Part shown: piece by piece, positions 5,425 to 33,361 of the stretch | Layout: every line of letters begins with the position of its first letter | How positions within the stretch are numbered: the first letter of the stretch is position 1 | Origin: Andalucia godoyi And28 | Lineage: Eukaryota > Protista > Jakobida | Assembly (NCBI GenBank): GCA_009859145.1 | Contig: VRVR01000052.1 | Span: 124,001 to 188,000 of the forward strand | DNA: 64,000 nt | Direction: 5' to 3' | The notes under the pieces: generated by a model | Databases searched by the model: none | What the model was told of the DNA's origin: nothing | What the model saw: only the letters and a program-made list of their open reading frames with translations | Position numbers and translations under genes: made by a program

Positions 5425-5670
5425 TGGTTTTCACTTTTTTGCAGCGTTTGTTCCATAAGGCGACCGAGTATCGCGAGCGGCGCAAGCAAAGTGTTTGCAT
5501 GTCCCGCGTGCAGCTCACCGATTGATCGAGATTGGGAACGGAGCGCGGAGCATTTATCTGAAGAACGCCGTGAGGCGTGTTGGGGGGCCTATCCCCTTCC
5601 CGGCAGCGGAATGCAAGACTGAATATGCATGTCTATTCGTAGTTATGCATGTTCACTGTATAATGTAGGC
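5425..5670 (+). mobile_element. Decayed 3' part of a Fanzor/TnpB element (relic A), including the right end
   Basis: Frameshifted fragments W..H-F, QRLFHKATEY (5442-5471), SKVFACPACSSPIDRDW, then after a 1-nt insertion NGARSIYLKN (5537-5566), i.e. zinc-finger second half plus RuvC-III. The terminal 38 nt match relic B (34/38 aligned identities plus a 2-nt indel). Confidence 0.85.
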
Positions 5671-5690
5671 ATTGTACGTTCCACACATTC
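5570..5690 (+). ncRNA. Predicted Fanzor omegaRNA scaffold 3' region plus about 20-nt flank-derived guide
   Basis: 15-bp hairpin 5621-5654 (12 WC, 2 GU, 1 mismatch) capped by UUCG; G-rich/C-rich stem at about 5582-5597; position between Fanzor C-terminus and element end. The 5' boundary and expression are unknown. Confidence 0.5.
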
Positions 5691-5963
5691 AAAAAACAGG
5701 TTTTAATTTTTTATAAAATGCCTACCGTGGAAGCCGCCGCTGTAGTCGTCTTGGTTGAGCCGCATGAGTCAAAGTTTTAAAGGCGTTCAAGTTTCGGAAG
5801 ACGCATTCAAGTGTTCCCCCAATTTTTTCCAAGCTTTTTCGTATTTTTATTATTATTTTTTCATCTTTTTTGTTTATTGACATTTTCCGTTTTTGTTTGT
5901 GTTTATTTTCGTTTTTCTTTCTTTCGCTCAATAATCCGTCCAGTGACGACAGTGCTGTATGCG

Positions 5964-7277
5964 ATGATCTCTGTTGTTGTGGCGTTGCCGACTGACGACA
6001 TTGTTTCAGTGGACGTCGATGAAGATGAGACTGTGGAAAATCTGAAGGCGCTCGTTGAGGTTCAAACCCAGATCCCGCTGGCGCACCAAAGGCTGTTCTA
6101 CTCGGGGAGAGAGCTTGCGAACACTGCGGTCCTTCGGTCCATCGGCATTGTTTCGCAAGATGTTTTGCAGTTGCTGGTTGCTGCTGCTGCTGCTGCTCCC
6201 GGTACCTCAGTCTCTTCCGCCACCAGTGCGTCAGCGCAGGGAGTTCCCAGCGCACAGCAGCTTGCGGAGCTAGCCATGTCAAATCCTGCGGAGCTGGAGA
6301 GGCTCATGGCAACAAATCCCGCAGTTTCTCAATTTGTACAGAATCTTATGGCGAATCGAGGTGCTCCAGACCCCTTTGAGGCAGAACTTGCGCGCCTTGA
6401 TCCGATGAGCGAAGCGTACCAAAGGAAACTGGAACAATCGATTTCTCAAAAGAACATTGAGGAAAATCTGGCATATGCAATGGAACATAATCCTGAGTCC
6501 TTTGCATCTGTCTTCATGCTGTACGTCGATTGCCATGTGAACGGGGTGAATCTCAAGGCGTTTGTCGACAGCGGTGCACAGACGACGATCATGAGTCTCC
6601 AGTGCGCAGAGAGGTGTAATATTTCGCGGCTCATTGATAGAAGATTCCGGGGTATCGCCATGGGGGTTGGGCAGACTGCAATCATTGGAAGGATCCATGC
6701 CGTCCCCGCGAAGTTTGGCAACACTTTCTACAGTCTAAGTGTCACCGTTCTTGACAGCGATAATATGGAATTCTTGCTCGGACTTGACATGTTGAGGAAA
6801 TTGCAGGCCACCATGCATCTTGGACCGGACAACTGTTTGCAACTGGGTCCAGATAATCGACTTCCATTCCTTAGCGAAGGGGAAGTTCCGAAAACACTCC
6901 GAACGGGAACTGCTGCTGGGGATGCTGCTTCTGTTTCGCCAACTGTTTCTGGGCCTTCCTCTCGACAAGGGCCTGCGAACGGCCCCGGGTCCCATCCAAC
7001 GCCTTTCAGCGGCCAGGGTCGAACACTTGGTTCTGGAAGTACACCAGCACATGCTCCATCTTCGTCTCCTGCCGCTGCCACTGTTGCTGCGACTCCGACT
7101 CCTGTCTCTGGTTCATCGCAGTGTCGACCGTCGCCGGCTGTTGCAGCTGCATTTCCCGAGGAGGCTGTGAGGACTCTGATGGACATGGGTTTTCAAAGAG
7201 AAGCCGTCATAAAGGCTTTGTCTCGGGCACGAGGCAATGTCGACGTCGCTGCGAATATCCTAGTTTTTGGAGAGTAG
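5964..7277 (+). CDS. DDI1: DNA damage-inducible protein 1 (UBL, retroviral-like aspartyl protease, UBA)
   Basis: N-terminal UBL (TVENLKALVE...QRLFYSGREL), protease motif AFVDSGAQTTIMS, C-terminal UBA (LMDMGF...AL...GNVDVAANIL). First ATG at 5964. Confidence 0.95.
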   Translation: MISVVVALPTDDIVSVDVDEDETVENLKALVEVQTQIPLAHQRLFYSGRELANTAVLRSIGIVSQDVLQLLVAAAAAAPGTSVSSATSASAQGVPSAQQLAELAMSNPAELERLMATNPAVSQFVQNLMANRGAPDPFEAELARLDPMSEAYQRKLEQSISQKNIEENLAYAMEHNPESFASVFMLYVDCHVNGVNLKAFVDSGAQTTIMSLQCAERCNISRLIDRRFRGIAMGVGQTAIIGRIHAVPAKFGNTFYSLSVTVLDSDNMEFLLGLDMLRKLQATMHLGPDNCLQLGPDNRLPFLSEGEVPKTLRTGTAAGDAASVSPTVSGPSSRQGPANGPGSHPTPFSGQGRTLGSGSTPAHAPSSSPAAATVAATPTPVSGSSQCRPSPAVAAAFPEEAVRTLMDMGFQREAVIKALSRARGNVDVAANILVFGE

Positions 7278-7327
7278 GATAGCGCTTGTTTTGTAAATTC
7301 CAAGATATCCCTTTTCTTCCCGATTTT

Positions 7328-7879
7328 TTACAATGATATGGCAGACGAAGAGATGTGATGAAACACATCAGAGTGCTCGGACACGGCGGCATCAAGATAT
7401 CGTGCGGTGGCGTTCCCTTCAACATCGTGCATATCCACGCGCACACTGGTTCTCTGGCTTGCAGCCGGTTCCTTTCCAATGTCCGTTTGCCAGTACGAGA
7501 AAGCTTCTACGCGAGACACCCCAGGCTTCAGCAACGACCGCCGACTCTCGGGCGGCACTGCTCCGATGCGATTCACGATGACTGCAATGTGCTCGGCCGT
7601 CAAGAACGTCTCCTTCCTTAGCGAGCTTGCAAGATCCTCCATGGAGGTGTCTCTTTCGAACAAGTAAAACGCAAAGCTGAGAAGCTCTTTGTAGGTCTGG
7701 TAAGACTGCACTTCTTGGTGTCTTCGTCGAAAACGCGAGAACGAGTCGACACACGGAGCACTGCGACTCACAACAGACGACACAGTCTTGAAGACATCGT
7801 CGACAGTCTCCACAGAGAGCATCGCCATCGCATCTGCACCCAGAACACCGGGAAAAGGATACCCCGTCGCAGAAGACAT
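7328..7879 (-). CDS. Hypothetical protein, possibly COMM-domain (COMMD)-like
   Basis: Part of a 280-aa ORF; from ATG 7879 it is 183 aa, typical COMMD size. Helical N-part (LLSFAFYLFE...EDLASSL) and VEAFSYWQTDIG, resembling the COMM L.D..W..D motif. Start codon uncertain. Confidence 0.4.
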   Translation of the reverse strand: MSSATGYPFPGVLGADAMAMLSVETVDDVFKTVSSVVSRSAPCVDSFSRFRRRHQEVQSYQTYKELLSFAFYLFERDTSMEDLASSLRKETFLTAEHIAVIVNRIGAVPPESRRSLLKPGVSRVEAFSYWQTDIGKEPAASQRTSVRVDMHDVEGNATARYLDAAVSEHSDVFHHISSSAISL

Positions 7880-8154
7880 GGTGTTGAACGCTTTTACTCG
7901 CAGGAAAATCGTTCTGTCCGCACGGCCCATGGGCATGGACTGAAGCAGGAGAAGAAGAAGACGATTGGAGAACATCGATTCGGTGACGCCTGTCTTTTTT
8001 TTCAAGAACCCCTCGCCTGTTGTCGCCATGCGTCGACTTCGCAGAGAAGCGTTCCTCGGGGTGCTTTTCGGGTAGTTCTGATGACTTGCTTGGCCTTGTT
8101 GTCGCCGACGGAAGAAAGAAGAACAGGAATCGGTAGCATCGGATACGTAATCGA

Positions 8155-8445
8155 ATGGCCAGCGACACACAGTATGAGGAATCCTTTCGACGGATTTGCC
8201 AGTCGTCTACTGAAGCGGCATCCGTGCTCTTCACGCCAACGATGTCCCACGTCCGCGAAGCTGAAAATCTCTGTGTATCAGACGACTTTCGGTTGCCGTC
8301 GGACGTTAGTCAGGTGGTCAAGGAGTACGTGTCAAATGGATGGCCGTTTCTGGAACAGGATCGACGAATAAGCACCTTGGAAATGAAGCTGAAAAGCCTG
8401 GCTTCTCGAATATGCGCTTTGAAAAAATCCGCAGGACACTCCTAA
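8155..8445 (+). CDS. Small hypothetical protein with C-terminal coiled coil
   Basis: 96-aa ATG ORF with protein-like composition (RISTLEMKLKSLASRI), divergent from the preceding gene. Confidence 0.35.
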   Translation: MASDTQYEESFRRICQSSTEAASVLFTPTMSHVREAENLCVSDDFRLPSDVSQVVKEYVSNGWPFLEQDRRISTLEMKLKSLASRICALKKSAGHS

Positions 8446-11400
8446 CTCCGTGCAGCCGAGATACGGTTTTTCTTTCTCCGTCAATGGATGTACCGTATGC
8501 AACTACGCGTATGGGAAGCGACATTAGTGTGCGATCCCAGCACTATGATGGGCATTCTCCGTTGCGCTCAATGATCTGGCCCCGTGCTGCCGTCAGCAGT
8601 TTTGTTCAGGCTTCATTGCTCGACAGCGGGATAGGTACCGTCACCATGGACGTTTGTGATGTGAGGAGTCCTTTCCAATCACACCCATTTTGCCCAGTTA
8701 GGTTGAAAGTACGTCGAGAACAGTGCGGTTGGTTGGGAGCTCCCCTGGGCCGGCTTCAAGAAGGTGAGCTGTCGCGATGTTCAACCAAAAAGATAATAAT
8801 TATGAAATGGTGTGGAAACAGCAGGTGTGGGGCCTTCTCAACCGGTCAGTCGATTCATCGACTATCCGCCAGCAGAACGTAAAAAGCAAACATTTCAAAA
8901 TAACGTAACAATCTAAGTGCCCCAGAAGAGTCGCAATATGTTGCGCATGCAAAATGCGGAATGCATCGAGCACAAACACAGAGAGAGAAAGAGAGAGGAC
9001 GGCGGGGAGGGGGAGAACACTGTGTAAACGACACGGTCTCGAATGGATGAAAAATAATGCACCAAATAACGATCCTCTGTCTGTCTCTTGCTGAGAAATG
9101 AAGAGAAACGTTTGACCGGCGACGCACAACATGACATCCAACCGCTCACTTGCGCGGTGTCACAATATTGTGACTCTCTCGAAAGCGAAAGGTACGCATC
9201 CCAGAAACAGAAGCAAACGGCGGAATAAAACGCATCTGTACAACAGAGACTCGTGTAAGTCTTCTGGCACGAACTACATAGAAAACAGAGCCATACCGTT
9301 TTATGAACAGCCATTTCAAATCATTTGCACAGACGGTGGCGAGCAATCCCGTGTGTTGTTTCAGATAAATGCGTCGCTCGGAAGCAGAAAATAAGGACTG
9401 TGCTTTTGACGTGCCAGCCGAGGATATTCTGCACGGGTCGTTGACTGCCGAGATTCGCCAGTTCCGTGTTTGCGCACTGTCGTTGATTGTGCAAATTATC
9501 AGATGCATTGCTCGTCGTTGATCGTGCATCCGAGGAAGACGCATCGTAATGCGCTCAAGAAAATAAGGGCTATTCCTCTCCATGTGGAAGCGGGTGTAGG
9601 GGGTCACTTGTGAGCGACAGTGCGTGGAGGCTTTGTCCCGGTCGGTGCAAGCAGTTTCTCGGGAAGACGAGTCCAGGAACGACTGCACGAAACAGGATAC
9701 GGAAGCGACATGATATGCAGCAAAGCGGTTGACAGCGCAGGTTCACGGTAATGTGCTGACTTCCGGAGGCCAGATCGATGCCTTTCATCGCAAATAAGTA
9801 TCTGCAACAAGAACTTGCAAGATTTGCAAGAAAGTCTGTCTCAGAACCAACATACCATCCGAAACGACAATTTGGTAGAATGCAGAAAAAGCCGGTGTGT
9901 CCAATGGCCACGGAGAAAAAAGCTGAATGAACACTTCGGCTCCTCATTTTGTTATATTCTCTTTTTTTTAATATTTGGGAAACGAACACGATCGTCGCAC
10001 ATTGATGAAACCTGGAGAACTGTTAAAAATGGAGGATGCACCAAAACATACTTTTGAATTTGTGCCGCTGACAACCATCAACGCTACTGGAGTAATTAAA
10101 TCGACTAAAATTTTGTAGGGGGAAGGTTATTCGTTCTGTGTTGTGACTCTGCCCACTCTCTGCAGAATTGCACATTGGGGATCGTCCTGGGCTACGGTGT
10201 GTGCTTGTTCTACCGGAGCATGTGATACTTGTTCGAAATACACTGTTGAGCGTTCTTTCACTTGCATGCAAACCAATACCCCAACGGTTTTTTCCCGCAA
10301 ATCAGCAATGCCGACAGCACAGTGTTGACGGTTCGGAATGCGCATGCGGCATCCTGCGCTCTTCTTACACTGGACGCAATTATTACTCAGAATTTTAATG
10401 CCAGAATTCATTTTGCTTCGATGCAAACAAGCGAATTTAGCATGCCACAGGCATCCTGTCGCCCTATCATTACTGTGGCCGAAGTAACAGGTACCCATCG
10501 TGATTGCTTGTCTCTATTATCTGAGTGGAGAAAGTCGCGACCGGAGTGTTGGAAATGCACGTTTCGCATTCCACGGGTAGCTAGCAAACCTGTTGGAACA
10601 GTTGGTATTACAATACGGAGTGCATCTGCCTAGGAAAATATGACTTGGGGAATCGAACGCTGTTGACACCGGTATGCGATTTCGTCGACCGAATAAGTGA
10701 CATAAGCAAACGTGCAGCAAAGCAAGAGCAGACGCTTACGTCTGTGAGAGGCGAATCCACCTGTTTGTAGCATAAACGGTGATTTTGGTATGCACTCATC
10801 ACTGCTTCATATCCTGATAAGCGTTCGTTTCCTTTTGGAATTCGACGATGCATTGCACGAAATGCAACAGAGTCGCCCGATTTGTCTTGTGTGCCGCTTC
10901 AACTTTCGGTGCTCTGTTAGATCGCTCTGTTATTGAGCTGACCATGCATTCTCCGTTTGTCATTCTGTTTTTCGCTGAGCGGTTGACTAGCTGATGATGA
11001 CCTCGTGATCGATTCCCAAGAAGCACATGCAAGGAGAGAGCCAGTGTGTGTTGAAGGTTGGCAGACCCGTGCACTTCTTCACATAGATTCCTTCCTGATT
11101 TTGCACGACATCTGCAACCGATGACGTCATCCGTGCTGAATTGTGCGTCCAGCATTCCGTCGAACATCCGAAGCCCAGAACCAAATTCTCCAGTGCAGAA
11201 ACGACGAGGCTCCGTTACTGCTGTGCTCAGAATTTTCGACGGATGGTTTAAGTTGTTTGGTCATCTGCTTTGTGTTTTGCAGTGTTTTAAATTTCCTCAA
11301 TTCAACAGTGTATCGAGTCTTAACTGCACGGTTCTTTTCAATAGTAAAACAAACAACGTCAGACAACATCGTATCGAATGCTGAACACTCGCTGGGACGC

Positions 11401-12002
11401 ACGTGCATCCGTTGTTCCGCTGTGCCATCTCCGCTCCGTCTTTCTCTTCTCTCAGGATGTGCGTCTTAACTGTAGTGCCCTCCCCCCTCCCCCCTTCTCA
11501 TGCAGAGACGCGCCTCACTATGCCACCGTATTCAGATCCACATCCCTCAAGCGGACATCACCGATCGCCGATTTCCATTCTCTTGTTCGTGGCGCGCATC
11601 GGGCAGTTGAGGTTTCAGCAAGGCGTCTTCACGGCTCCGCAGTGGCTCTCCGATTTTTTTCTTCTTCGTTGACCGAAATCTGGTTGATATGCGCGAGAAT
11701 CCTCTGTTTCGGACTTGCCCCAACACTCACTGTTGCTTGCGATCCACTGCTTTCACGCATATTGGGATATGCAATACTTCCCCCGATTTTTCCAACGTCT
11801 GTAAGAGCCCGATGTCCGGTCAGTAAAAGTCGTGTCTCGGCAGTCGGAGTTCGCGGGATTCCTTCCCCCGCTATTCATCTTCTTCTTTTGGGCCAAATGG
11901 TTGCTGTCAATCCGTCTTTTTAATTCTTACGTCCTCGCGTTCCTTCTGTCGCTTCATAGAGGCTTGGAATTTTCTGTCCTTTTTGCGACCGCATTGAAAA
12001 AA

Positions 12003-12362
12003 ATGAACAATAACGTGTTAGCAGAAGTCGCAAATTCCGAGTTGGAGTCCTTTGGAAAATACTGCAATCTCGAGCAGGACAATCTTCAGGCACATTTCCT
12101 CGGTGCAGTTTCAGAGGCTCTCAAAATAGAAAACGAGACCAAAGGCTTCATGTCTGCCGTCGCCGATGTTGTCCGCGACACGGAAGCTGCGCTACGGACG
12201 GCAGAAACAACAGCTGACGACAACGCAATTGGTTTCATGCAGTCGGCACAGATTGCCATCCAATTCATTGGTATGCGCTCTTCCAAATCTACACTGCTGA
12301 AATCAATGATCACTGACGTTTCCTCCCCCTCTCTTGTACAGCAGATGAAAATGCGGGCTTAA
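12003..12362 (+). CDS. Small alpha-helical hypothetical protein (119 aa)
   Basis: ATG at 12003 after an A-rich leader within the 176-aa ORF; amphipathic helical composition; converges on CTU2. Confidence 0.55.
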   Translation: MNNNVLAEVANSELESFGKYCNLEQDNLQAHFLGAVSEALKIENETKGFMSAVADVVRDTEAALRTAETTADDNAIGFMQSAQIAIQFIGMRSSKSTLLKSMITDVSSPSLVQQMKMRA

Positions 12363-12521
12363 CGGAGAAAATCCTTGACATCGCACGACTCATGGTGTAC
12401 CAAGCATAGCAAAGCGATGACAATGATAAAAAAAATAACAAAAAAATTATAAAAAAATAGCAACAAAAACAACAATAACAACCGGAAAACACCGGAAAGC
12501 AGTCGCGACATCTGAGCATCA

Positions 12522-13772
12522 TCACCAGTCCACGGCACCATACGCGGCAGGAAATGAATCCGCGTCCTCTATCAGGAAATCATCCAAATACGCCTTCATG
12601 TTTTCGCGCGTCATCAGCCGGCTCCGATGCCTGGCAGTCTGCACAAACTCTGGCTCCTGGGATGCAAGACCAGGCAATTCCTGCTCCATGCGTCGACAAG
12701 CATAGCACGTATCATGGCCCAGTTGCAGTTCCTTACCATCCATGAAATCACGACACAAGACACAAAAAACTGCTTGTTTTGCACCGGCTTCAGAAAGCTT
12801 CACGAATGACAGCTTCTCTGCAGCGCGCAGTACCGTGTGAATGGTGGTTGGAAAGCCTTCCTGCAGGTTCGTGACGAAATGATCAGTTGCGCGAAAGATT
12901 GTCGCAGTCGGATCCAAACATGACGAGAATGTAGGGAGCACTGCTGCGCAAATGCTGTTCGATCTCGCATAAAATGCAATTTCTCGTGGCAATGAGTCCC
13001 GCATTGGTCGCATGATGGTGCACCCAGGGAGCGAAACGACGTCCTTCTCCATAATGTGAAGCGGCATTGTCAGCCCGCTTCCTCGGCAGACATCGGACAG
13101 AGACTTCACAACCAGCGCCTTTGCTGAATCAGCAAACAACATGATTGAAGCACTCCATTTTGCTGCTTCATCAAGAAGAATCCGGTTTCTCAGCGCAACC
13201 AGCAATTCCTCCTTTGCAGAAGCCGTCCTTGCAGATTCAAACGCTGAAAGAAACGCCTCGCGAGACTCAAATCCTTTGTCGGCAGGAATAATTTGATAAG
13301 AGAATCCGTCACTCTCCTGGATTCCAATGCTCGCAATGGTGGTCTCAATCTCTGTCCGGACGTGTTCCGAAGGCGCCAGTTTCACAGGAGACACATCATC
13401 CACAAACACCACTTTCAAATCGAAGAACAGCTTTCGCTTTGCCGAATTCTTAGAGCGCAACAGCATAAACAACAAGACAGCAGAGGAAAATCCACCGGAA
13501 AACGCAAGAAATACACGGGATCCCGCTTTCAGATTGCTTGCTCCACCAAGATACTTTAGTACTCGCTTTGCAAACGAATACTGAAAGCACTCTGCACAAA
13601 CAACTTCTTCACGACAGAGAAAAGACGCTGGTTTACTGCATCGTCGGCACGAAGCATTGCGCCCAAGCATTGCTGGCTTCAACTGTTTCACAGGAGCATC
13701 GGCTTCATTGGTGCACGTAGGACGGTGGCTGCGGTCGTCTCCGGATAACGACGAGCAGTCTGAATTACTCAT
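12522..13772 (-). CDS. CTU2: Cytoplasmic tRNA 2-thiolation protein 2
   Basis: N-terminal CxxC...CxxCF zinc motif, degenerate PP-loop AFSGGFSS, IMRPMRD, C-terminal CVLC...CYAC. First ATG at 13772. Confidence 0.85.
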   Translation of the reverse strand: MSNSDCSSLSGDDRSHRPTCTNEADAPVKQLKPAMLGRNASCRRCSKPASFLCREEVVCAECFQYSFAKRVLKYLGGASNLKAGSRVFLAFSGGFSSAVLLFMLLRSKNSAKRKLFFDLKVVFVDDVSPVKLAPSEHVRTEIETTIASIGIQESDGFSYQIIPADKGFESREAFLSAFESARTASAKEELLVALRNRILLDEAAKWSASIMLFADSAKALVVKSLSDVCRGSGLTMPLHIMEKDVVSLPGCTIMRPMRDSLPREIAFYARSNSICAAVLPTFSSCLDPTATIFRATDHFVTNLQEGFPTTIHTVLRAAEKLSFVKLSEAGAKQAVFCVLCRDFMDGKELQLGHDTCYACRRMEQELPGLASQEPEFVQTARHRSRLMTRENMKAYLDDFLIEDADSFPAAYGAVDW

Positions 13773-14179
13773 TATTTCCAACTATACAGTGCCGAGCGAT
13801 GCCTGTTTTATGTGTGTGTGATGAGACGAGTGTGAGAGAGAGAGAAATAAACTGGGATCTCTTGGGGGTTGTTGACTTTTGGCGAGCGAACAGGGTTTCC
13901 GAATGCCACAATAACTTGAGGCAACGAGGTTGAGTACGCTGCGGGATGGAAGAACTTGGAGCTGCAGATTTCAACCTGTCGGCAAAACGCACCCCCCACC
14001 TTCCGCTGGCACACTGCTTTCATCCCTCTTCCCGCTTTCCAAGCTTCCAGGCGGGTCCCAATTCCTCAATTCAAAATGAAGTTCTTTGCGCGTTCATCTT
14101 CTTTCCTGTTTTTCCTGTCTTTCCTCCCCGCTCTTCTTCTCTTTTTGAATTTCCAGATAGCAAAAATCACTAACCCAAG

Positions 14180-14632
14180 ATGGCCCGCACCAAGCAAACT
14201 GCCCGCAAGTCCATGGGAGGCAAGGCCCCCCGCAAGCACCTTCTCGCCACCAAGGCCGCCCGCAAGTCGGCGCCCGCTGGTGGTGGAGTGAAGAAGCCCC
14301 ATCGTTTCCGCCCCGGTACGGTTGCGCTGCGTGAGATCCGCCGCTACCAGAAGTCGACCGAGCTGCTGATCCGCAAGGCGCCGTTCCAGCGCCTCGTCCG
14401 TGAGATTGCCCAGCAGGCAGGCTCCGGCTCGTTCGGCGGACAGGGCGGAGACCTCCGCTTCCAGTCGGCCGCAATCGGCGCACTCCAGGAGGCCGCCGAG
14501 GCGTACCTCGTTGCGCTCTTCGAAGACACCAACCTGTGTGCAATCCACGCCCGCCGTGTCACCGTCATGCCCAAGGACATGCAGCTTGCACGCCGCATCC
14601 GTGGCGAGCGCGCAACCGCCACTGCCCAGTAA
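14180..14632 (+). CDS. H3: Histone H3 variant (H3.3-like AAIG motif, loop-1 insertion), copy 1
   Basis: [10 protein letters not shown] tail, complete histone fold, 150 aa. Confidence 0.97.
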
Positions 14633-19540: not shown

Positions 19541-20635
19541 TTAAAGTTGAATTCTCGAGCGGTCCTCCTTTGCCTTTGCGAGGCGTCTCAGTTCCGCAGC
19601 CGAGTCTTCATGCGCCACGGATCCTAAGAACTGAGAATCATGCGCCGAAATGGCTCGAGCGACATTGACCGCCCTTTCTCCCACGACTGGTCTGCATTCT
19701 GCAAGGCCAGTCAGAAGATCTGCCACAGATTGCAACTGCGCTCGGAGCTCACTGTAGCAAAACTTGGCTGAACCAGCAAGAAGGTCCACTTCCGATAAGT
19801 TCATCGTCGCAACAGCCGATTCATCGACTGCCAAATCCAGCAATGTAGGCATTCGACGTTCCAAGGCGGACGACGAGTACTCGTGGCGAACTCGTGTCCA
19901 TCCATCGATTTCTCGATCCAGTGCAGAAAGCTCTTCTTGCAAGCGTTTTGCTTCCGCTGTCTCTTCTCCAGATAGCTTTTCCGATTGCTTGATGACGCGA
20001 GGCAGCTCGAACGGCAGCTCTCGAGTCAGAGAATCAATGACCTTTCCTTTAACATTCTCAAATTCGCCCCGCAACAACGCATCGTCCACATGCTCAAACG
20101 CAGCATCGAGTGCCCGATCGTACAGTTGCAGTAGTCGGTCCTTTGTGGAATCGGACATCGAAATCAACTCGTGCAAATTCTCGTAAGGATCTCTTCGGTG
20201 GCTCGAACTGTCGCTCAAGGCAGATGCTGCCAAAGACGCGGAAGCGGATCCAGAAGATGACTGAGCTGAAATTGGCTTCTTTGACGGAGATGGAATAGGA
20301 TACGACGAGGATTTCTTGGATTGCGGAACATCCGAAGCGACAATATCCTTCTTTGCAGCTGTTTTGAAAGTAAAGCCGCCATCGACGACTGGTTGCTGCT
20401 TCGGCGTCGCCTTTCGAAACGCAAAGTCCGAGGACGCGGCGGTATGTGACGAAGGAGCAACGGGTGCAGCGGCCGGACGAAACTCCGGTAGAGGAGACCT
20501 TGCAATCTTGGAAGGCTTCGAAACTGGAATTTCATCTGCAGAATCGCTGTCATCCACAGGCCGATTTCTCTTCAGAATCGATGTTCGCCTCCGATCATCT
20601 TTCTTGTTCTTGACTCTGAAATCAAAACCGTCCAT
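19541..20635 (-). CDS. Hypothetical protein, possibly kinetochore Dsn1/Mis13-like
   Basis: 364-aa ATG ORF. Disordered N-half with repeated DGF.F motifs and RRTS, then LHELIS...DRLLQL...AL and a coiled coil. The ORF is well supported, the identity is tentative. Confidence 0.45.
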   Translation of the reverse strand: MDGFDFRVKNKKDDRRRTSILKRNRPVDDSDSADEIPVSKPSKIARSPLPEFRPAAAPVAPSSHTAASSDFAFRKATPKQQPVVDGGFTFKTAAKKDIVASDVPQSKKSSSYPIPSPSKKPISAQSSSGSASASLAASALSDSSSHRRDPYENLHELISMSDSTKDRLLQLYDRALDAAFEHVDDALLRGEFENVKGKVIDSLTRELPFELPRVIKQSEKLSGEETAEAKRLQEELSALDREIDGWTRVRHEYSSSALERRMPTLLDLAVDESAVATMNLSEVDLLAGSAKFCYSELRAQLQSVADLLTGLAECRPVVGERAVNVARAISAHDSQFLGSVAHEDSAAELRRLAKAKEDRSRIQL

Positions 20636-23835: not shown

Positions 23836-23942
23836 CTCTTTTCCTCTTCTCTCTCTGTTTCGTCTTGTTATTATTTTCCCCAATCCACAGCTCTCTCATA
23901 ATTAAAGAAGAAGGAAAAAGAAAAAGAAAAAAGCCACTTGCC

Positions 23943-25937
23943 ATGTCTTTCTCTCAAGGTAAGGTGAGCACGATGGGGCTTGCCATCGGCTTGCTCGCCG
24001 TTCTCGTTGTCGTCTCTGTTTTTGCAGAGGACGATCGCCCCCAGGGCCCTGTTATCGGAATTGATCTGGGAACGACGTACTCGTGTGTTGGATATTTCCG
24101 CAATGGACAAGTCGAAATCATCCCGAACGACCAGGGCAACCGAATCACACCCTCTGTCGTAGCCTTTACGGACACCGAGCGGTTGATTGGAGATGCCGCC
24201 AAGAACCAGGCGACTATCAATCCCACAAACACTGTTTATGACGTGAAGCGTCTTGTCGGACGCCGCTTTACAGACAAGGAAGTGCAACGTGACGCCAAGC
24301 TTCTGCCTTATGATATCGTCGACAGGGACGGCAAGCCGTACATCCGGGTTGTTTTCAAAGGCGAGGAGAAGGTGTTCTCTCCCGAAGAAGTGTCAGCCAT
24401 GATTTTGGTGAAGATGAAGCAGATCGCGGAGGCGTACATTGGAAAGGAAGTGAACCATGCAGTCGTGACTGTTCCCGCGTACTTCAACGACGCTCAGCGT
24501 CAAGCAACCAAGGATGCCGGCGTCATTGCGGGTCTCCAGGTCCTTCGTATCCTCAACGAGCCGACTGCAGCTGCAATTGCATACGGTCTTGATAAGAAGG
24601 GCGAGCAGAACATTCTTGTTTTCGATCTTGGCGGCGGAACTTTTGACGTTTCACTGTTGACCATCGAGGACGGCGTTTTTGAAGTTGTTGCAACGAACGG
24701 AGACACCCATTTGGGAGGTGAGGATTTTGATCAGCGTACCATGGAGTACTTCATCAAGATTTTCCGCAAGAAGTACAACAAGGATATGTCCAAGGACAAG
24801 CGATCGCTCCAGAAGCTTCGTCGCGAGGTTGAGCGTGCCAAGCGTGCCCTCTCTACTCAACACGAAGTTCGTGTCGAGATCGAGTCGCTGTTTGACGGCA
24901 TTGATTTCTCCGAGAAGCTTACTCGTGCCAAGTTTGAGGAGCTCAATAACGATCTGTTCCGCAAGACGCTTGTCCCTGTAGAGGCTGTTCTGAAGGACGG
25001 AAAGCTGTCCAAGAAGCAGATTGACGAAGTCGTTCTCGTTGGAGGATCCACACGTATCCCCAAGGTCCAGAAGCTCATCAAGGAGTTCTTCGACGGAAAG
25101 GAGCCGAACCGCGGAATCAACCCGGATGAGGCTGTTGCTTTCGGTGCCGCCGTGCAGGCCGGTATTTTGTCTGGTGACCAGGATCTTCAGGAGAAAGACA
25201 TTGTGTTGCTGGATGTCACCCCGCTCTCTCTCGGAATTGAGACCGTCGGAGGAGTCATGACCAAGCTTATTGAACGCAACTCGGCCATTCCCACCAAGAA
25301 GTCGCAGTCCTTCACCACATACCAAGATAACCAGCCATCCGTGTCCATCCAAGTGTACGAAGGAGAGCGCCAGCTGACCAAGGACAACCATCTTCTCGGA
25401 AAGTTCGACCTTACTGGAATCCCCCCTGCACCTCGCGGAGTTCCTCAGATTGAGGTTTCATTCGAGCTCGATGCCAACGGCATTCTGCAGGTGAGCGCTG
25501 TTGATAAGGGTACTGGAAAGTCGGAGAAGATCGTCATTACCAACGACAAGGGCCGCCTTTCGAAAGAGGAGATCGAACGTATGGTCAATGAGGCCGAGGA
25601 GTTCGCCGAGGAGGATAAGAAGCTCCGGGACCGCATTGATGCACGCAATGGATTCGAATCGTACGCCTACAACCTCCGCAACCAGATCCAGGACGAAGAC
25701 AAGCTCGCCAACAAGATCTCTGAGGAGGACAAGGCGCTGTTAGAGAAGGAGGTCAAGGCTGCGTTGGAGTGGGTGGAGAAGAACCCGAGCGCAGAGACGG
25801 AGGAATTCAAGGAACGTCAGGAGGAGCTTGAAAAGGTTGCCCGCCCCATCATTTCCAAGATTTATGGTGGCATGCCGCCAAATGGTGATTTCGCTGGAGC
25901 TTCGGATGAAGACATCCCTGACCACGATGAACTATAA
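23943..25937 (+). CDS. HSPA5: ER Hsp70 chaperone BiP/GRP78
   Basis: Signal peptide, [29 protein letters not shown]-terminal HDEL. Confidence 0.98.
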
Positions 25938-27032
25938 TCGATTTGTTTGTTTTGAATGTAGAGATTTTCTGTCGTCCTCCAAGCTCAAGCTTATCCCGTC
26001 GGACATAAGTAAACAACTTAGAGAAGAGAAGATCACACGGCTTTCGCCGCATGTCGTCTGCTTCCCCCCCCTCCCCGCTTCCCCCCATCGGAGTCGTCCC
26101 GTCCGTGACAGTCAGTGAGAAAGCCTTCCTCGACTCTCGGCTGTTGGTCTGTGATGCGTTTTCCAGTCTTTGGAACACTGCCTTCATCAAATGTAGTGTC
26201 CAAATTGCACGCAGCATGCAGCAGCAGCACACGGCTTATTTAAATTAAAATAATAAAAGAAAGAAGAACACCGCAGACGAAATGCTGTCAAGGCAGACAC
26301 GGTTCTTCCGCTGACGTCTCGAGAAATTCTTGGGAGTTAACCCTGTGGTTTTTACTCTCCCAGGTCTGCGAATTTCTGTAGCTTCTTATGCATGTGCGTT
26401 CAAATTCATGTTCACACCGCAGACTCGTCATTCATCATTTCCTTTTGTTTTAGAAGAAATGTCGGCGAAAAAAAACCAAGGCTTCTTAATTCCATCCAGT
26501 TCAGCAGATGTCGTTTTGGAGCTTCTGGCGAATTCCTCCTGTTCAAAAACCTCTCTCCTCGTCCTCGCTCCGCCTGATCTCTCCTTGCGCATTTTTCTTA
26601 TGAGCTCTTTCCCGAGAACACTTTGCTCTTGCCTCTTGCATGAACTGGAGAGGTGGAGGAGACACGGAGTTCATGAAATTCCTGGAGCGCAAACTACGAT
26701 CGGGAAAAAAGAAAAGAGAGTCAGAAAAAATAATAAAAATACCCGATTCCCGCCAAAACACGCCCGTTCGTTCGATTAAAAATAATCGTTTCAAGCACCG
26801 CCGTGCAGCGATTTCATCGTGTTTCTTTTTTCTTTTATTTAATTTTTGGTTTTGCGGACAAGAGAGTCGAGCGGGTTTGGTTTCGTCTTCCGAAATCAAC
26901 GAGGACAACGAGAGGAGATTGTCAACGGTTTGCAGCTGTCGTATGAATCCAGAAAGGAGACGTCCGCGTGTGTGATTTCGGAAGATTCATCTGGGCTGAG
27001 GAATCGTTTTCCTTTCTTTCGCTTACCGTCCC

Positions 27033-30000
27033 ATGTTCATTGAAGCGCAATCGCTCGACGAATTTCTAGTTTCATTCTGTGCGTCGCACATCGAAGCTGT
27101 GGAGAGATACGCGCGGCTCGTTGCCTGCCATCGTACGGCGCTGTCTCGATATTTCATTATTGTTCCCAGATCCGTGACGCTCCCAGAGCCGAAAGTGACT
27201 TCCGACGCAAACATTCTCGAAGTGATTGATCATGTCATTACGGATCTGTTGACCGAGAATTCGACGAGCAACGTCTTGTCGTTTGGGTACAATCGCAAGA
27301 CGTCTGCTGGAATTTCAAATGTGTTGCCAAACGTCGAATTGTCATTCCCCAACTCAGCCACTGAGTGTGTGCGAACGCCAGTGATGGACGCCACATGCCA
27401 GATGATTGGACCAGATGTGATGTTCTTTCTGCTGCGGAACTGCATGTTGTTCTATCTTCGAGCTGCAGCAGTCTTGCAGCAGATTGCAGGACCTATGATT
27501 TCTTCATCGCTGTCCTCAAGGCAGTATTTCAAGATTACCCGCGTGTTGCCTGTTGGGTCCGCCTCCATGCCGCTTGAGCGACGGAGGAGGCCTTCGCGAT
27601 GCCGGAGACATGCAAAGGTTGCCGAAAGAGCATCGGCGGAAGCTGTCGGTTTTGGTGAGAATGAATGCGATTCCCTTCATGATGATGATGATGATGTTCA
27701 CTGTTCGTCTCCCATTGTCTGGGTTTCCCTTGTTGACCAAGGATGGTCTGCGGAGGATTCCAATCAAGCCTCTGTCGCTCCACCACCACCACCTCCTCCT
27801 CCTCCACCACCACCAGTCAGCAGAAAGACGACCAGACCTCCGGATAGCGACGACAGTTCCGTAATCGAGCCTTCTTCGAAGAGACTCCGAATCGGGAACG
27901 AGCGGCCAACGGAAGCAATTGAACGTAGCCAGCATGTCCTGCCTCTGGCCTCGGTGTCGAGAGCGGCGGCACCAGTCCGTTCGACAAACAAGAAAGCACC
28001 GAAGAAGAGGCGACCGCTGCGCGTTTCGGATTCCAACACTGCAATTCGAAGTCTGATGTTTTACTCAAATGAAGCGCCGACAGCCAAGGGGCTTCCAAAG
28101 ACACACGTCTTCCGAAGTATTTCGTCCCCGACAGCCTCGGAAGAACTGTCCCGCATCATCACGTTTTCATTGTTTCCGGAAAGCAAGGGCCAGAATGACC
28201 GAGTCAAGGAGTCATTTGAACCAATTCGCAAGTCACTCTGTCTGATTCATCGAAACTTTAGAAAATGCAACTTTGCCGAGCTACTCGAAACCCACTGCTC
28301 CATTCGCTCCAGGATTTCCGATTCCCAAACGAGAGGAGCTTTGAACGGAACTGCACCGTCTGGCAGTCCAAAACATGCGACGGATACGTCTTCACCATTG
28401 CATACGCAACAAATCCGTCCAGATTCTCTCAGCACTGTTGCTGGAGACTTGATGACTCAGCCCTCTGCGTTCCTTGCATTGACCGCCCCGACTGATGCGG
28501 ATATCTTCGGACAAGACGATGACATTGGTCTCTTGAATGTTTCTGTGGAACTGAAAGCCGATTACGAGACGCACATCCGAAAACATTCTTCTCCCACTTC
28601 TGTTGTTCGATTTTTGGTTGCGTGCACTCGGCATTTGATACCGATTCCTTTTTGGGGGAATTTGGAGAACCAGAAGGTCTTTGAGGATCGCATTTGGGAT
28701 TTTGTGACCACAGAGCGCTGGATTGCGATCACGGTGGGTCATCTGACGCAAGGACTTGCGGTTTCAAAGCTCGGATTTGTGCGACGGACGCATGGGATTG
28801 GCGTGGTCCCTGGGGAGCAACATCGTTTGTTAAAGGAGCGCACGAATGTTGTGATTGATTGGATTTTTCGCGTATTGGTGATTCCTCTAATTCGGGCGAA
28901 CTTCTATGTTACTGAGACCCAGCTTCATGGTCGAAACAAGGTGTTCTTTTTTCGAAAGGATGTATGGGCCGCCGTTTTGCGTATCGGACTGCGCATGATC
29001 AGCCGACAGCATGATCGGTATGCGCTGGTTTCATCCATTGCGTGGAAGGGATCAAATGGGCCCAAGTCCTATTCGCATGTGCGGTTTGTTCCCAAGAAGA
29101 GCTCTCTTCGTCCGATTGTTAATCTTGGGAAGAACAAGAGCCGAGACTACTCGGTTAACAAGAAACTGCGAGACTCTTACCTTGTGTTGAAAAATGAAGC
29201 GTTCAAAAATGAGCCAATAGACGAGACTCTGCATTCGAGACTTGGGGCCTCTGTCTTTTCGGTTCTGGACGTTTTCCGGAAATGGATGCCGTTTGTGAAT
29301 GCCCGTAACGCCTCCTTGTCGCCTTCGCCCTTGTACTTCGTGTCGGTCGACATCACTGCGGCTTTCGACTCCATTCCGCATGCAGAATTGCTGAATTTAA
29401 TTAAGGATCCGATGTTGCTGGAGCATCATGAGTATTTTCTGCAACGGGTCTCGCTGACGCGACCGCAGTGGGGTCGTCTTTCAACAAGTTATCCTCGGTT
29501 CGTGGCTGCAGATTATGACTTCCCATTCGTTCCTGACGTCGACGACGAAGCTGGCTTGGAAAAGGGTTTCTCGCACTCAGAGGTCTCTGCAGTCATGGTG
29601 GACTACGCTGCTGGTTCGAACGTTGGTCGTGCAGCGTTAATTCAGCAAATTCAGGATCACATCACGCAGCACTTTGTCAAGATTGACGGAGATGTCTTTC
29701 ACCAGCATGTGGGGATTCCACAAGGCTCGATCTTATCTCCCATGCTGTGCTCGTTGTTTTATGGCAAGTTTGAAAGACAAGTTCTGCTCCCATCGTGCGA
29801 CTTGTCTGCCTCGGATGCAGCCAATCCAATGATCTTGATGCGCATGATGGATGATTTTCTTTTTGTCACATCGGACTTCAGTCGTGTTTCCAAGTTTCTT
29901 GAGGTCATGGAACGTGGGTCAGCTTCCTTTGGAGTCACCATCAACACAGAGAAAACGCGAGCTAATTTCGATCCCTCTTCACTTTGTTCAACACCAATTC

Positions 30001-30788
30001 TTCCGACATCGAACTTGGTTGCGGATGCCGTACCGACGTCGTTGTGGTTTCCTTGGTGTGGGCTGTTGATTCACACCTCCACGTTGGAGGTTCGGTCTGA
30101 TTTTTCCCGGTATGAAGGCGATTCGTTTCTTGATACAAAGTCCTTTATCATCGACACAGACACTGCGCCAACATTGAGCTTGGTTCGAAAGCTCAAGCAG
30201 CTGCTCTCCCAGCGTCTGCATCCGCTGCTCTTCGACGCGCGTGTGAACAGCACGTGCATCCAGATTCTGAATTTGCATCAAGCCTGCCATTTGTGTGCTA
30301 TTCGATGGTTTTCGTGCATCCGGAGAACAGTGTTTCGTACAAATTCGGAGCGTGCCGCGATTATTCGGAATCGTGGAATGTGCGTAAGCCAGCGGGACTG
30401 CCAGGTGGTGATTGAAACCTGCGTCGTCTACGTTCGAGACCAGTTTTGCCATCGTCTGCTTCGGAGAATGCAAGAAACAGATCTCGGGGCTGTAGATCGT
30501 CGATGCTCGTTTCTGCAGCACAGTGCTCTAGCATCGTACGTCGTCGGTCACGCATTTTTGTGTGTGATACGGCGCAAGCAATCGCGGTTTCCTCAGTTGT
30601 TTCGGTGGATTGTGCGGTTCGTGCATCGTTCTTACGAAACCGTCAGGCGCCAGTATGCCACCGATGCACGCTTCGCCAACCAGCTGGATCCGGGCCGTTC
30701 ATTTCGCGAATGGTGGCGAGACGTGCAGGAAATTCTGGATGTCAAGAAGCATCCGCTGCAGGCGTCGTTTTGTAGGATTCGTTACTAG
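27033..30788 (+). CDS. TERT: Telomerase reverse transcriptase, intronless
   Basis: T motif FYVTETQ...FFFRKDVW, motifs 1/2 RFVPKK...LRPIV, A FVSVDITAAFDSI, B' GIPQGSILSPMLC, C RMMDDFL, E WCGLLI; TEN-like N-terminus. Confidence 0.96.
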   Translation: MFIEAQSLDEFLVSFCASHIEAVERYARLVACHRTALSRYFIIVPRSVTLPEPKVTSDANILEVIDHVITDLLTENSTSNVLSFGYNRKTSAGISNVLPNVELSFPNSATECVRTPVMDATCQMIGPDVMFFLLRNCMLFYLRAAAVLQQIAGPMISSSLSSRQYFKITRVLPVGSASMPLERRRRPSRCRRHAKVAERASAEAVGFGENECDSLHDDDDDVHCSSPIVWVSLVDQGWSAEDSNQASVAPPPPPPPPPPPPVSRKTTRPPDSDDSSVIEPSSKRLRIGNERPTEAIERSQHVLPLASVSRAAAPVRSTNKKAPKKRRPLRVSDSNTAIRSLMFYSNEAPTAKGLPKTHVFRSISSPTASEELSRIITFSLFPESKGQNDRVKESFEPIRKSLCLIHRNFRKCNFAELLETHCSIRSRISDSQTRGALNGTAPSGSPKHATDTSSPLHTQQIRPDSLSTVAGDLMTQPSAFLALTAPTDADIFGQDDDIGLLNVSVELKADYETHIRKHSSPTSVVRFLVACTRHLIPIPFWGNLENQKVFEDRIWDFVTTERWIAITVGHLTQGLAVSKLGFVRRTHGIGVVPGEQHRLLKERTNVVIDWIFRVLVIPLIRANFYVTETQLHGRNKVFFFRKDVWAAVLRIGLRMISRQHDRYALVSSIAWKGSNGPKSYSHVRFVPKKSSLRPIVNLGKNKSRDYSVNKKLRDSYLVLKNEAFKNEPIDETLHSRLGASVFSVLDVFRKWMPFVNARNASLSPSPLYFVSVDITAAFDSIPHAELLNLIKDPMLLEHHEYFLQRVSLTRPQWGRLSTSYPRFVAADYDFPFVPDVDDEAGLEKGFSHSEVSAVMVDYAAGSNVGRAALIQQIQDHITQHFVKIDGDVFHQHVGIPQGSILSPMLCSLFYGKFERQVLLPSCDLSASDAANPMILMRMMDDFLFVTSDFSRVSKFLEVMERGSASFGVTINTEKTRANFDPSSLCSTPILPTSNLVADAVPTSLWFPWCGLLIHTSTLEVRSDFSRYEGDSFLDTKSFIIDTDTAPTLSLVRKLKQLLSQRLHPLLFDARVNSTCIQILNLHQACHLCAIRWFSCIRRTVFRTNSERAAIIRNRGMCVSQRDCQVVIETCVVYVRDQFCHRLLRRMQETDLGAVDRRCSFLQHSALASYVVGHAFLCVIRRKQSRFPQLFRWIVRFVHRSYETVRRQYATDARFANQLDPGRSFREWWRDVQEILDVKKHPLQASFCRIRY

Positions 30789-31053
30789 GCAAATGAACCA
30801 CGAGTCACAACGCGTTGCTGCTACCTTCACTTTATCGAAGAATCACTGCACCAGTCCATCGCCGTGTTGCCATGCCATTTTTTTAATTTTATTTTATCAC
30901 TGTCCTGTATGCCATCAAGCGGGCGCATGAATGCAGCATTCCGCTCAACCAAAACAAAAAGCGAAGACCAGAAGGGAGCACACGCGCACACACACCCAAT
31001 TTCATCCGTCACAAACAAACAAGCCAACCCACGTGCTGCAGCAGACAATTCAT

Positions 31054-31989
31054 TTATCCACCGCCAGATCCGTAGGTCTTTCCGAAAACGAGCATCTGAA
31101 GCTGGTCATATCCGGAAAGAACACCGGCACCGGCAATGGCACGGAGGATGTTTGCACCCGCACCCTTGAAGAGCGACTTGTAGCCCTCCTTCTTGACGAC
31201 TTCGGAGAAGCAGTGCATGGAAGAACGGTACTTCTCGGCCTGTCCAGAGGTCATCATCATGCGGCGGCGGATGGTGTCAATGGGGTAGGATGCCAAACCG
31301 GCTCCGATGGTGATACCCCATCCGAGCAAGAATGACGCCAAGAACGAGTTCTTGAGGTCTCCGCGGAGAACAATAGGCTTGAGCGAATCGTACATTCCAA
31401 AGTACAAACCACGATAGACAACGATACCAACGGCGGAGATATTGAATCCACGGTAGAGTCCGGCAATTCCGTCAGTGGCAAGCGTCTTGCGGTAGACATC
31501 GACGAGTCCGTTGAATTCACGAGAACCTCCCTTCTTGGCACTCTTGTTGTCGTTGGCCAGGCGGGTACGCGCATAGTCCAACGAGTACACGAAGAACAGC
31601 GAGGCGGCTCCGGCAGCTCCACCAGATGCAATGTTCGACGAGAACTGCTTCCAGTACGGGTCAGTCTTCTTGACCGCGAACATTCTCTTGAACTGGTCCT
31701 TGAACGCAAAGTTCAAGGCCTGCGTCGGGAAGTAACGCACAACGTTGGCGACGTTTCCACGCCACAACGAGCCAATTCCTTCCTCGGCAACAGTGCGCTT
31801 GAAGCACTCGCCAATTCCAGAATACGGGGTTGCAAGACGGCCCTGCTTGATCATCTCGTCCTGGTTCTGGATGAGGAGCTTCACACGCTCGATCGGGGCA
31901 GCTGCAGTCTTGGAAACAGCGGCTGAGACACCTCCCATCGCGAAATCGATGAGGAAGGACATCGTGTCATTCTTCTTTTCAAGAGCCAT
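31054..31989 (-). CDS. ANT: Mitochondrial ADP/ATP carrier
   Basis: [33 protein letters not shown] signature. ATG at 31989. Confidence 0.97.
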
Positions 31990-32719
31990 CTTGCTGGATA
32001 ATACTGGCAGTGATTCAAGAATAAGGTCAAGAAAAACGGGGCAGGATTCCAAGAGGAGAAGAGAGAGAGAGAGAAAGAGAGAAAAGCAAAAAGCAAGAAG
32101 AAGAAAAAAAGAAAAGGAATCGACAGCTGGAAGGGCGGAAGGCCAATAGACCTGGGTTGTGGGGACCTCGTGCCAAACTTGAGAACACACAGCCCTTCCC
32201 AACCGGTCAGACAAAGCGCTTGTGCGAATTTCATGTGTACCCACTAGTTGGACGGTGCGAAGTGGAATGACACTTGCTTTCCTTTGGTGGCCAATGACAT
32301 GACACGCCAATCCCTCCCTGGCGTGCACCATCCATTTTCCCACTCTCTTGCCGGAAAAAAAACTGCTATGGGTTTGGGTTTTCTCCCCAGCGTTTTCATT
32401 AGTCTAACAAACGCCGGACCTTGTCAGGTTTTATTTTTCCGTTTCTTTCTTTATGATTACTATTTTTTTTTAATTACGTGCGCTGAGGGATCGTCTCCTG
32501 CGACACTGAGGTGTGCTTCGATTCAAAGCTTTCTCTCGCGAAACGGGAACAGGAAATTCTTTGTTCTGTTTGATTCTCTCTTCCTATCGGCTGAATCGCA
32601 GGGGCTTTGCCTCTCGCAGCGGCTTCCCGCTTCGAATCGTGCAACGTCTGTAAATGCTTTTTCGTCGGCTACGACAGTCGGATTACTTTCCCCCACCAAT
32701 AAAAAGTCGCCACACATAC

Positions 32720-33361
32720 GCCTACATTATATACCCTGAGCATGCATATCTACGAATAGACATGCAAACACTTTGCTTCCGCCTCGACGTGCATGGATCT
32801 CGCCGCAGCGCCCGCACGTTTTGGACGTGTACTCCGCACCGAGCCACCTTCTCAGCGTGACGCGTTGTTCCTGAGAAGGGTGCATTTTGATTCTGACGGC
32901 CCTAGCAGCAGGCGCTTTCGTGTCCTCAGTTGCAGCGATTGATGCACCTGGAGATACGAGAGGAAGCAATGTAACTTTCGATCGGAAGCAGCCCGCCGAC
33001 ATTGTCGCACCCGCTTTGAACCCAGCGTCCTTACTGGCATCTGGACCCAGTGGTTTCCTGGAACCGTCAAGGCCTCCGAGCGCCTCACATTTTTGCGGTT
33101 CTTCCTGGACATGGCTCCGCGGCACTCGTTTCTGAACATGGCATTGACCAGCGTTATGTCCCTCTTGCATACCGTCAGCCCTCCATTCGCCTGCTCCACC
33201 GAGGGGCTTCCTAACCTGTCGTCCACTCTCTGGCGCGTGATGCACAGTTCACGATGGAAAATGGAAACTGCCTGTTCGGCGACCAGACTGGAACCTTCGT
33301 CGACGCAGTTCCATTCCCATTCGCTCGCGGTATCAGGAACTGATCGGGCAGTTGATCGCAC
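32720..33361 (-). mobile_element. Internally deleted Fanzor/TnpB element (relic B); left end not defined
   Basis: Minus-strand ORF joins the TnpB/Fanzor N-terminal HTH (RAVRIKMHPSQEQRVTLRRWLG) directly to the zinc-finger start (EYTSKTCGRCG...GGSKVFAC). It ends in the same hairpin and TAATGTAGGC terminus as relic A. Confidence 0.85.

Follow-up and report, generated by a model that had tools for sequence, protein, structure and literature searches.

Decayed copies of a probable Fanzor2-type, IS607-like transposon in the nuclear genome of the jakobid Andalucia godoyi

Fanzor2 nucleases, their association with IS607 transposons and the omegaRNAs encoded at the 3' ends of these elements are established. 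A stretch of 64,000 nucleotides (nt) from the jakobid Andalucia godoyi And28 (contig VRVR01000052.1, positions 124,001 to 188,000; hereafter the window, to which all coordinates refer) raises the question of whether such an element has resided in this protist as well, as an earlier note, made from the letters alone, had proposed on the basis of two short, partly similar pieces of DNA. The note held that the two pieces, here called relics A and B, belong to one IS607-like Fanzor family, possibly undescribed, and that the end of an omegaRNA and two different guides can still be read from them. Our analysis supports, with a probability of about 0.85, the reading that a single Fanzor2-type IS607-like transposon gave rise to both loci, which are its decayed, non-autonomous copies; the parts of the proposal that concern guides and function fared less well.

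Identity and common defects of the relics

Relic A (5479-5671, plus strand) is a 193-nt, 5'-truncated right-end fragment of a Fanzor2/IS607-like element, and relic B (32945-32719, minus strand) is an internally deleted copy that retains an N-terminal piece, the first half of a zinc ribbon and the terminus. The two share a 24-nt block and a terminus of about 45 nt, and their flanks diverge directly after TAGGC, the abrupt divergence that had been described for them. Both blocks are present as described, but relic B lacks 130 nt that separate them in relic A (5503-5632), between two TGCATGT repeats. The shared strings themselves are real and non-random: GCATGTCTATTCGTAGWTATGCATG, with up to three mismatches, occurs in the window only at 5627-5651 (plus strand) and 32765-32741 (minus strand), where 0.00 matches are expected, and TATAATGTAGGC only at 5659-5670 and 32731-32720 (0.04 expected), while AAGCAAAGTGTTTGCATGT lies at 5484-5502 in relic A and at 32778-32760 in relic B. 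Reciprocal nhmmer searches return the relics as mutual matches (E = 2e-6 to 6e-6) and, with each relic as query, no third copy in the window. The starting points given earlier, 5425 and 33361, are not supported, as evidence of the element begins only at 5479 and 32945; the 60 nt upstream of 5479 show no similarity to relic B, and searches with 33361-32946 found neither a homologue nor a Pfam domain nor another copy.

The coding remnant of relic A (5479-5566, plus strand) covers RuvC-III (DRD-W / NGARSIYLKN) and, before it, the latter half of the zinc ribbon (FACPAC). In translation it reads GASKVFACPACSSPIDRDW and then, past one extra G at about 5536 that shifts the frame by +1, NGARSIYLKNAVRRVGG; this G is visible as an inserted base in the nhmmer alignment to a profile of cyanobacterial elements. 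A DNA profile of cyanobacterial right ends matches relic A at 5487-5561 (E = 6.8e-7), and tblastn with a metagenomic TnpB (L004) finds it with E = 7e-4. In relic B, the N-terminal TnpB/Fanzor piece (32945-32835, minus strand; ASIAATEDTKAPAARAVRIKMHPSQEQRVTLRRWLGA) corresponds to residues ~2-38, the 'HTH_OrfB' region; it is matched by a Limnospira TnpB in tblastn with E = 0.011 window-wide and 2.6e-4 locally, and weakly by Pfam HTH_OrfB_IS605 (E = 0.066). Abutting it is the first half of the zinc ribbon (32834-32760, minus strand; EYTSKTCGRCGEIHARRGGSKVFAC; tblastn E = 6e-8). Relics B (6e-8) and A (7e-4) are the only parts of the window that match a full-length relative in tblastn. A composite of both relics scores 34.8 bits against Pfam Cas12f1-like_TNB, above the cut-off of 26.3 (E = 1.9e-8), while the single fragments stay below that cut-off (E = 8.8e-4 for relic B, and 3.1e-3); matches in PDB at about 1e-6 are to Cas12f/TnpB proteins and to the mimivirus Fanzor2 L79, the latter with a low score of 29 bits. 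Past the second zinc knuckle, relic A carries CPAC-SSPI-D, which is of the form CxxCx(4,8)D. From their sequence, then, we identify the fragments as TnpB/Fanzor-derived, which bears out the identity first assigned to them. The motif fragments listed at that time are present as EYTSKTCGRCGEIHARRGGSKVFAC in relic B and as GASKVFACPACSSPIDRDW and NGARSIYLKN in relic A; RuvC-III, however, is split by the frameshift, and a supposed first zinc knuckle, 'CSVC' at about 5440, upstream of relic A, was rejected as lacking support at the DNA level.

The pieces of relic B align to TnpB residues 2-38 and then from ~315 onward, and some 276 codons are therefore missing at the junction 32835/32834 (residues ~39-314, which include most of WED, REC, RuvC-I and RuvC-II). 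With RuvC-I and RuvC-II deleted, and with the DRD of RuvC-III present only in relic A and separated from NGAR by the frameshift, the RuvC triad is not intact; about 90 of roughly 450 codons are left, frameshift included. To judge by these sequences, the relics are pseudogenes and no copy is able to encode a nuclease. The region of the DPG motif in RuvC-I, one of the marks of the 'pro-Fanzors', is deleted in all copies seen, and the relatives have DPG. With regard to the relocated glutamate, the relic reads A-E-Y-T-S-K-T-C, with five intervening residues as opposed to six in ExxxxxxCxxC, and the position where the glutamate is expected is taken by an alanine that was brought in from the N-terminal piece at the deletion junction.

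When the relic motifs were searched against proteins, a third copy emerged, the A. godoyi hypothetical protein ANDGO_01483, which is encoded outside the window and was compared as protein, relics A and B being the copies read as DNA. It reads MHPSQEQRATPRKWLGAEYTSKTCGRCGEIHARRG..., ends ...NGAWGIYLKHAVRRVGAYPLRGNGMQD, and is 83% identical to relic A over 36 amino acids (aa); it has both the deletion junction of relic B (WLGA|EYTSKTC) and the frame change of relic A before NGA. Because these defects are common to three dispersed copies, they are older than the dispersal, and we read the three sequences as descendants of a single master copy in which the nuclease gene had been gutted and frameshifted beforehand, rather than as fragments that complement each other by chance. 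Divergence among the copies is about 10% at the terminus and 17-22% at the protein level, and there are private deletions. A separate observation concerns the best non-self match of ANDGO_01483 in an exhaustive search, a 3359-aa protein of Cyanophora paradoxa in eukprot (P0123; E = 7e-8), in which five stretches match residues 47-75 of ANDGO_01483, partly outside the TnpB frame; this match may be a repeat or composition effect.

Relatives, right end and scaffold

Two groups of relatives were recovered. A word-indexed search led to a metagenomic TnpB and from there to about a thousand cyanobacterial TnpBs, which carry DPG and ExxxxxxCxxC and thus fit the published definition of 'pro-Fanzors', proposed as ancestors of Fanzors by Yoon et al. 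(2023; PMC10711439); in Limnospira, an overlapping gene with MerR and Resolvase domains lies upstream of the TnpB gene, which is the IS607 arrangement. The exhaustive search with ANDGO_01483 returned Fanzor2-like proteins of 440-490 aa with N-terminal extensions, which form an environmental clade from soil, freshwater and TARA Oceans contigs (including L090, L092, L093, L096, L111, L113, L115 and L150). On a 71-kb TARA Oceans scaffold, one of these genes comes immediately after a Resolvase gene; Resolvase genes are present in the TARA scaffold copies, and L096 has a Resolvase gene upstream as well. Among bacterial TnpBs, the cyanobacterial pro-Fanzors are nearest to the relics, and the environmental Fanzor2 elements that have a serine recombinase gene match more closely still. 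The C-terminal piece of the relics is about equally near to the cyanobacterial and the environmental groups (62-68% identity), whereas the N-terminal piece of relic B is 57-60% identical to environmental Fanzor2 loci (L135, L091) and only about 30% to cyanobacterial TnpBs. Since the closest relatives adjoin serine recombinase genes, the relic family itself is taken, by sequence relationship, to be IS607-like, in agreement with the earlier note.

Some features of these relatives were recorded in passing. In four metagenomic contigs (L001-L004; e.g., L004:707-1915) from different samples, a TnpB gene of the cyanobacterial type is split by a single in-frame TAA (KSVR*MLTW) at a position occupied by Q, N or S in relatives, next to HNH, DDE_3 and protein kinase genes; it is either a pseudogene or a case of recoding. 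Many environmental loci (L090, L092, L093, L102, L105, L111, L116, L123, L130, L133 and L164) share the motif STG...(R/L)PFWN..T....S.KLWLPT.TD. upstream of the nuclease core, seemingly within a long Ser/Thr/Pro-rich N-terminal extension; in L090, the motif falls inside the span called as the Resolvase gene. A likeness of 'LLPIESY' to this extension motif was rejected by a hidden Markov model (HMM) test.

At the right end, the environmental group matches the relics directly. The last letters of both relics are ...TATAATGTAGGC and one further base; the terminus of relic A (5659-5671, plus strand) consists of TATAATGTAGGC plus an A, where relic B and the relatives have G. Three TARA copies are identical through ...AAAGTGTAGGCG and divergent beyond it; the pair L092/L093 likewise diverges directly after TGTAGGCG, and the end of L096, L111 and L113 is ...TAATGTAGGCG, like that of the relics. 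In 15 of 96 loci, GTAGGCG follows RuvC-III at a distance of 113-265 nt (358 nt at one locus), a density of 0.47 per kb compared with 0.021 per kb elsewhere (22-fold enrichment). Because TGTAGGC(G) is also the point beyond which environmental Fanzor2 copies, independent of one another, cease to be alike, the shared terminus is, as far as sequence comparison goes, a genuine transposon right end, as first suggested. The earlier note had allowed for a boundary one nt further upstream; as relatives conserve TGTAGGCG, the element end, or a fixed flanking base, probably lies one nt later than the boundary given there, after GGCG, and in an IS607 TnpB a fixed right-flanking nucleotide belongs to the scaffold (Yoon et al., PMC10711439). 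By analogy, former guides, if there were any, would begin TTGTACG... in relic A and TATGTGT... in relic B.

The proposal that TAGG at this end marks a GG crossover finds no support in a conserved end that continues through CG. CG as the crossover dinucleotide, considered by analogy with the CCG target-adjacent motif of NlovFz2, found no support either, as the left junctions of L092/L093 show no repeated CG or GG. In the cyanobacterial elements, the right end lies exactly 9 nt past the tnpB stop codon and reads ...GCGTAAATGTATCAG (63 distinct right-end sequences; IS607 loci L005-L089); it is unlike the relic terminus, while the distance from NGA to the end is collinear (131 vs 134 nt). A likeness of ATGTTCA...AATGTA to the cyanobacterial end is not claimed as significant, as profiles of short termini ranked other sites first.

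Characterised Fanzor2 elements encode their omegaRNA at the 3' end, and the counterpart of that region in relic A is a stretch of about 100 non-coding nt between the coding remnant and the terminus. In 19 of 96 environmental loci, the 3' region contains a variable, covarying hairpin (P1), a short linker and then GGGGCCUACCCCC (P2). Relic A shows the same signature, a variable hairpin followed by GGGGCCUAYCCCC: P1 (5565-5578, plus strand) folds as ACGCC-GUGA-GGCGU, P2 (5582-5596, plus strand; GGGGGGCCUAUCCCC) corresponds to the conserved GGGGCCUACCCCC motif of the environmental subfamily, and both the position of P1 and the 'GTT' linker are as in L115 and L150. The P2 motif derived from the relatives has a single match in the window, at 5584-5596 in relic A (0.02 expected), and relic A and L115 share one P1 plus P2 fold. 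A covariance model built from 13 environmental loci (R2) has its best window match at relic A 5527-5606 (14.7 bits, E ~0.009; next match 6.5 bits), E-values of these quickly calibrated models being rough. A further match in the window, of AATGTAGGCA at 19842, is a chance one inside an open reading frame (ORF) without other similarity. About 20 nt from its end, relic A has a subterminal hairpin with a UUCG loop (5625-5650, plus strand; fold z-score -2.66), and subterminal hairpins also precede the terminus in L096 and the TARA copies. In relic B, the subterminal hairpin and right-end terminus (32766-32719, minus strand; ..TATAATGTAGGCG) stand directly after the zinc-ribbon piece because the 130 nt between the TGCATGT repeats are deleted, and P1 and P2 are lost with them.

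These matches point to relic A as keeping a recognisable, worn scaffold-coding region, and suggest that the 3' region may formerly have encoded an omegaRNA that took the flank as its guide. The claim that an omegaRNA end can be read is borne out at most in part: relic A has hairpins that resemble those of the relatives' scaffold, but relic B has no readable omegaRNA, since its scaffold core is lost, and a model of the cyanobacterial scaffold finds no match. The two supposed guides are merely the flanks of dead elements. In the cyanobacterial elements, the last 140 nt, almost all of them coding, form three hairpins, in which 16 of 23 pairs show compensatory changes, and the C-terminus of these TnpBs (..CSA/CVA) is probably constrained by both the RNA and the transposon end.

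Origin of the copies and competing explanations

We propose that an ancestral element with a serine recombinase gene followed by a gene for a TnpB-like RNA-guided nuclease would have resided in the A. godoyi nuclear genome. In a master copy, about 830 bp of the nuclease gene (residues ~39-314) would have been deleted and the +1 frameshift in RuvC-III acquired, with the right end kept, which in this family would hold the 3' part of the omegaRNA scaffold and end in ...TAATGTAGGCG. Derivatives of this copy would then have reached unrelated sites, presumably because an intact element supplied the recombinase in trans, or else by duplication. During later decay, relic A would have lost everything to the left of 5479, and relic B its 130 nt by slippage between the TGCATGT repeats. 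Both relics are most likely inert.

Several results weigh against this account. The window holds only two copies, and tblastn with cyanobacterial and environmental TnpA, together with Pfam searches in three frames upstream of relic B, found no remnant of a recombinase beside the relics, although such an absence is what one would expect of a non-autonomous derivative. A large protein search with the ORFs upstream in relic B gave no matches at all, not even ANDGO_01483, and is thus uninformative. The match of the ends consists of the terminal 7-11 nt and their equal position, with no long alignment, and short nhmmer profiles of cyanobacterial or TARA termini did not rank the relic ends first. 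As for the scaffold, Rfam contains no family that matches relic A or B, a covariance model of 53 cyanobacterial 3' ends (R1) has no match on either relic, relic A threaded on the cyanobacterial structure fits only 12 of 23 pairs, and R2 aligned P2 of relic A but skipped P1.

The explanation that competes best with a dead family is one in which the family is still alive, with an intact recombinase and Fanzor2 copy elsewhere in the genome (e.g., on omitted subtelomeric scaffolds), by which the derivatives are mobilised and make loadable scaffold-plus-guide RNAs. A deletion derivative at at least two to three unrelated sites, the retention of P1, P2, the subterminal hairpin and the terminus in relic A, and the modelling of ANDGO_01483 as an mRNA are all in keeping with this, and, according to the A. 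godoyi genome paper, the assembly omits subtelomeric scaffolds of a transposon/viral-like character. However, two protein searches gave no intact A. godoyi homologue, the divergence among copies and their private deletions point to old decay, and the scaffold core of relic B is gone, so that we consider a live family unlikely. It is similarly doubtful that A. godoyi still carries, on those omitted scaffolds, an intact tnpA(Ser)-Fanzor2 element belonging to a widespread, uncharacterised environmental clade with the GGGGCCUACCCCC scaffold and an end in UGUAGGCG, of which the relics would be trans-mobilised satellites that could yield guide-bearing RNAs.

We regard as very improbable that the conserved end and subterminal hairpin derive from a hairpin-dependent element, either an IS200/IS605 element with Y1 transposase or a Helitron, that captured a TnpB gene. 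The hairpin of 10-12 bp at about 20 nt from the end, and copies that are 5'-truncated or internally deleted with their 3' ends conserved, would suit such an element, but a CTRR terminus is absent, as is any counterpart of the hairpin elsewhere in the window, relatives with the same terminus carry serine recombinase genes, and Yoon et al. (2023; PMC10711439) found no evidence for eukaryotic IS200/IS605 transposons. We give next to no credence to an origin of the fragments as separate bits of bacterial (cyanobacterial IS607) DNA that came in through horizontal transfer or assembly contamination, as opposed to a eukaryotic transposon family: the C-terminal piece does match cyanobacterial pro-Fanzor TnpBs, also at the DNA level, and the culture was fed on bacteria, as the genome paper reports, but both relics lie between eukaryotic genes on a single contig, a deletion junction or a frameshift is common to three copies, and the N-terminal piece and the TGTAGGCG terminus fit environmental Fanzor2 and not the cyanobacterial elements (right end ..TAAATGTATCAG).

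The setting of the relics, which we read as copies of a decayed Fanzor2-type transposon, is a compact, almost intron-free array of eukaryotic genes with about 50% G+C, among them genes for telomerase reverse transcriptase, SUFU, a CHASE-domain cyclase, kinesin, UFD1, a mitochondrial carrier and histone H3; this agrees with the published description of the A. godoyi genome (~20 Mb, mostly intronless genes, tight packing). Between relics A and B lies the intronless 1251-aa telomerase reverse transcriptase gene (27033-30788; Telomerase_RBD and RVT_1). The two histone H3 genes are 469-nt stretches (14164-14632 and 43050-43518) with 100% identity, which begins 16 nt ahead of the ATG, ends precisely with the stop codon, lies between unrelated flanks and suggests gene conversion or a very recent duplication. 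A 1240-aa ORF (55663-59385) with ephrin-receptor-like/TNFR-like cysteine repeats has, at its very start, about five tandem copies of an 18-nt unit, GTATGAKCTGTACGCCWA (55661-55750). This ORF is flanked by a (TC)n(AC)n microsatellite (55436-55500) and a (GT)n/(GA)n-rich tract (60708-60787), which are inverted with respect to each other as a long, imperfect pair with a spacing of about 5.2 kb and are probably just simple repeats.

Comparison with known systems

As dead elements, the relics themselves are of minor functional consequence; they extend the host record and add one more member, a dead one, to the established Fanzor2 class. The family had been called possibly undescribed, which is true in part only; the Fanzor literature searched makes no mention of Andalucia or jakobids, but a Fanzor2 (NlovFz2) has been characterised in Naegleria lovaniensis, also a member of Discoba. 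With this record, Jakobida would join the known hosts of Fanzor2-type RNA-guided nuclease transposons; it also documents the spread of a gutted derivative inside a very compact protist genome. A more useful by-product is the set of environmental Fanzor2 loci with a sharp right end (TGTAGGCG) and a two-hairpin signature; end and signature could help to delimit the omegaRNAs and guides of a Fanzor2 subfamily near the cyanobacterial pro-Fanzors.

Like the Fanzor2 elements NlovFz2 and mimivirus L79/ApmFz2, the relics reside in a eukaryotic setting, have a TnpB-type zinc ribbon, RuvC-III and recombinase-paired relatives, and show a 3'-terminal structured region up to the right end, where characterised members encode the omegaRNA scaffold; unlike them, the relics lack a recombinase, RuvC-I and RuvC-II, and their coding remnant is frameshifted. 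With the environmental Fanzor2 clade, the relics share the terminus (T)AATGTAGGCG, P1 and the GGGGCCUACCCCC signature (in relic A) and N- and C-terminal pieces that are 57-67% identical, and the clade has an upstream Resolvase gene; its members, in contrast, are full-length (~2 kb, 440-490 aa), many with the PFWN...LWLPT extension, which is undetectable in relic B. The likeness to the cyanobacterial pro-Fanzors (PMC10711439) comprises 62-68% identity over zinc ribbon and RuvC-III, similarity at the DNA level, the collinear NGA-to-end distance and the tnpA(Ser)-tnpB architecture that is proposed for the ancestral element; the right end, the covariation-supported 3' structure and the N-terminal piece (~30% identity) set them apart. 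Finally, the relics resemble derivatives of DNA transposons of the miniature inverted-repeat transposable element (MITE) type in that they are internally deleted, non-coding, dispersed to several unrelated sites and have retained ends; in contrast to such derivatives, the two copies read here revealed no left end, target-site signature or large copy number.

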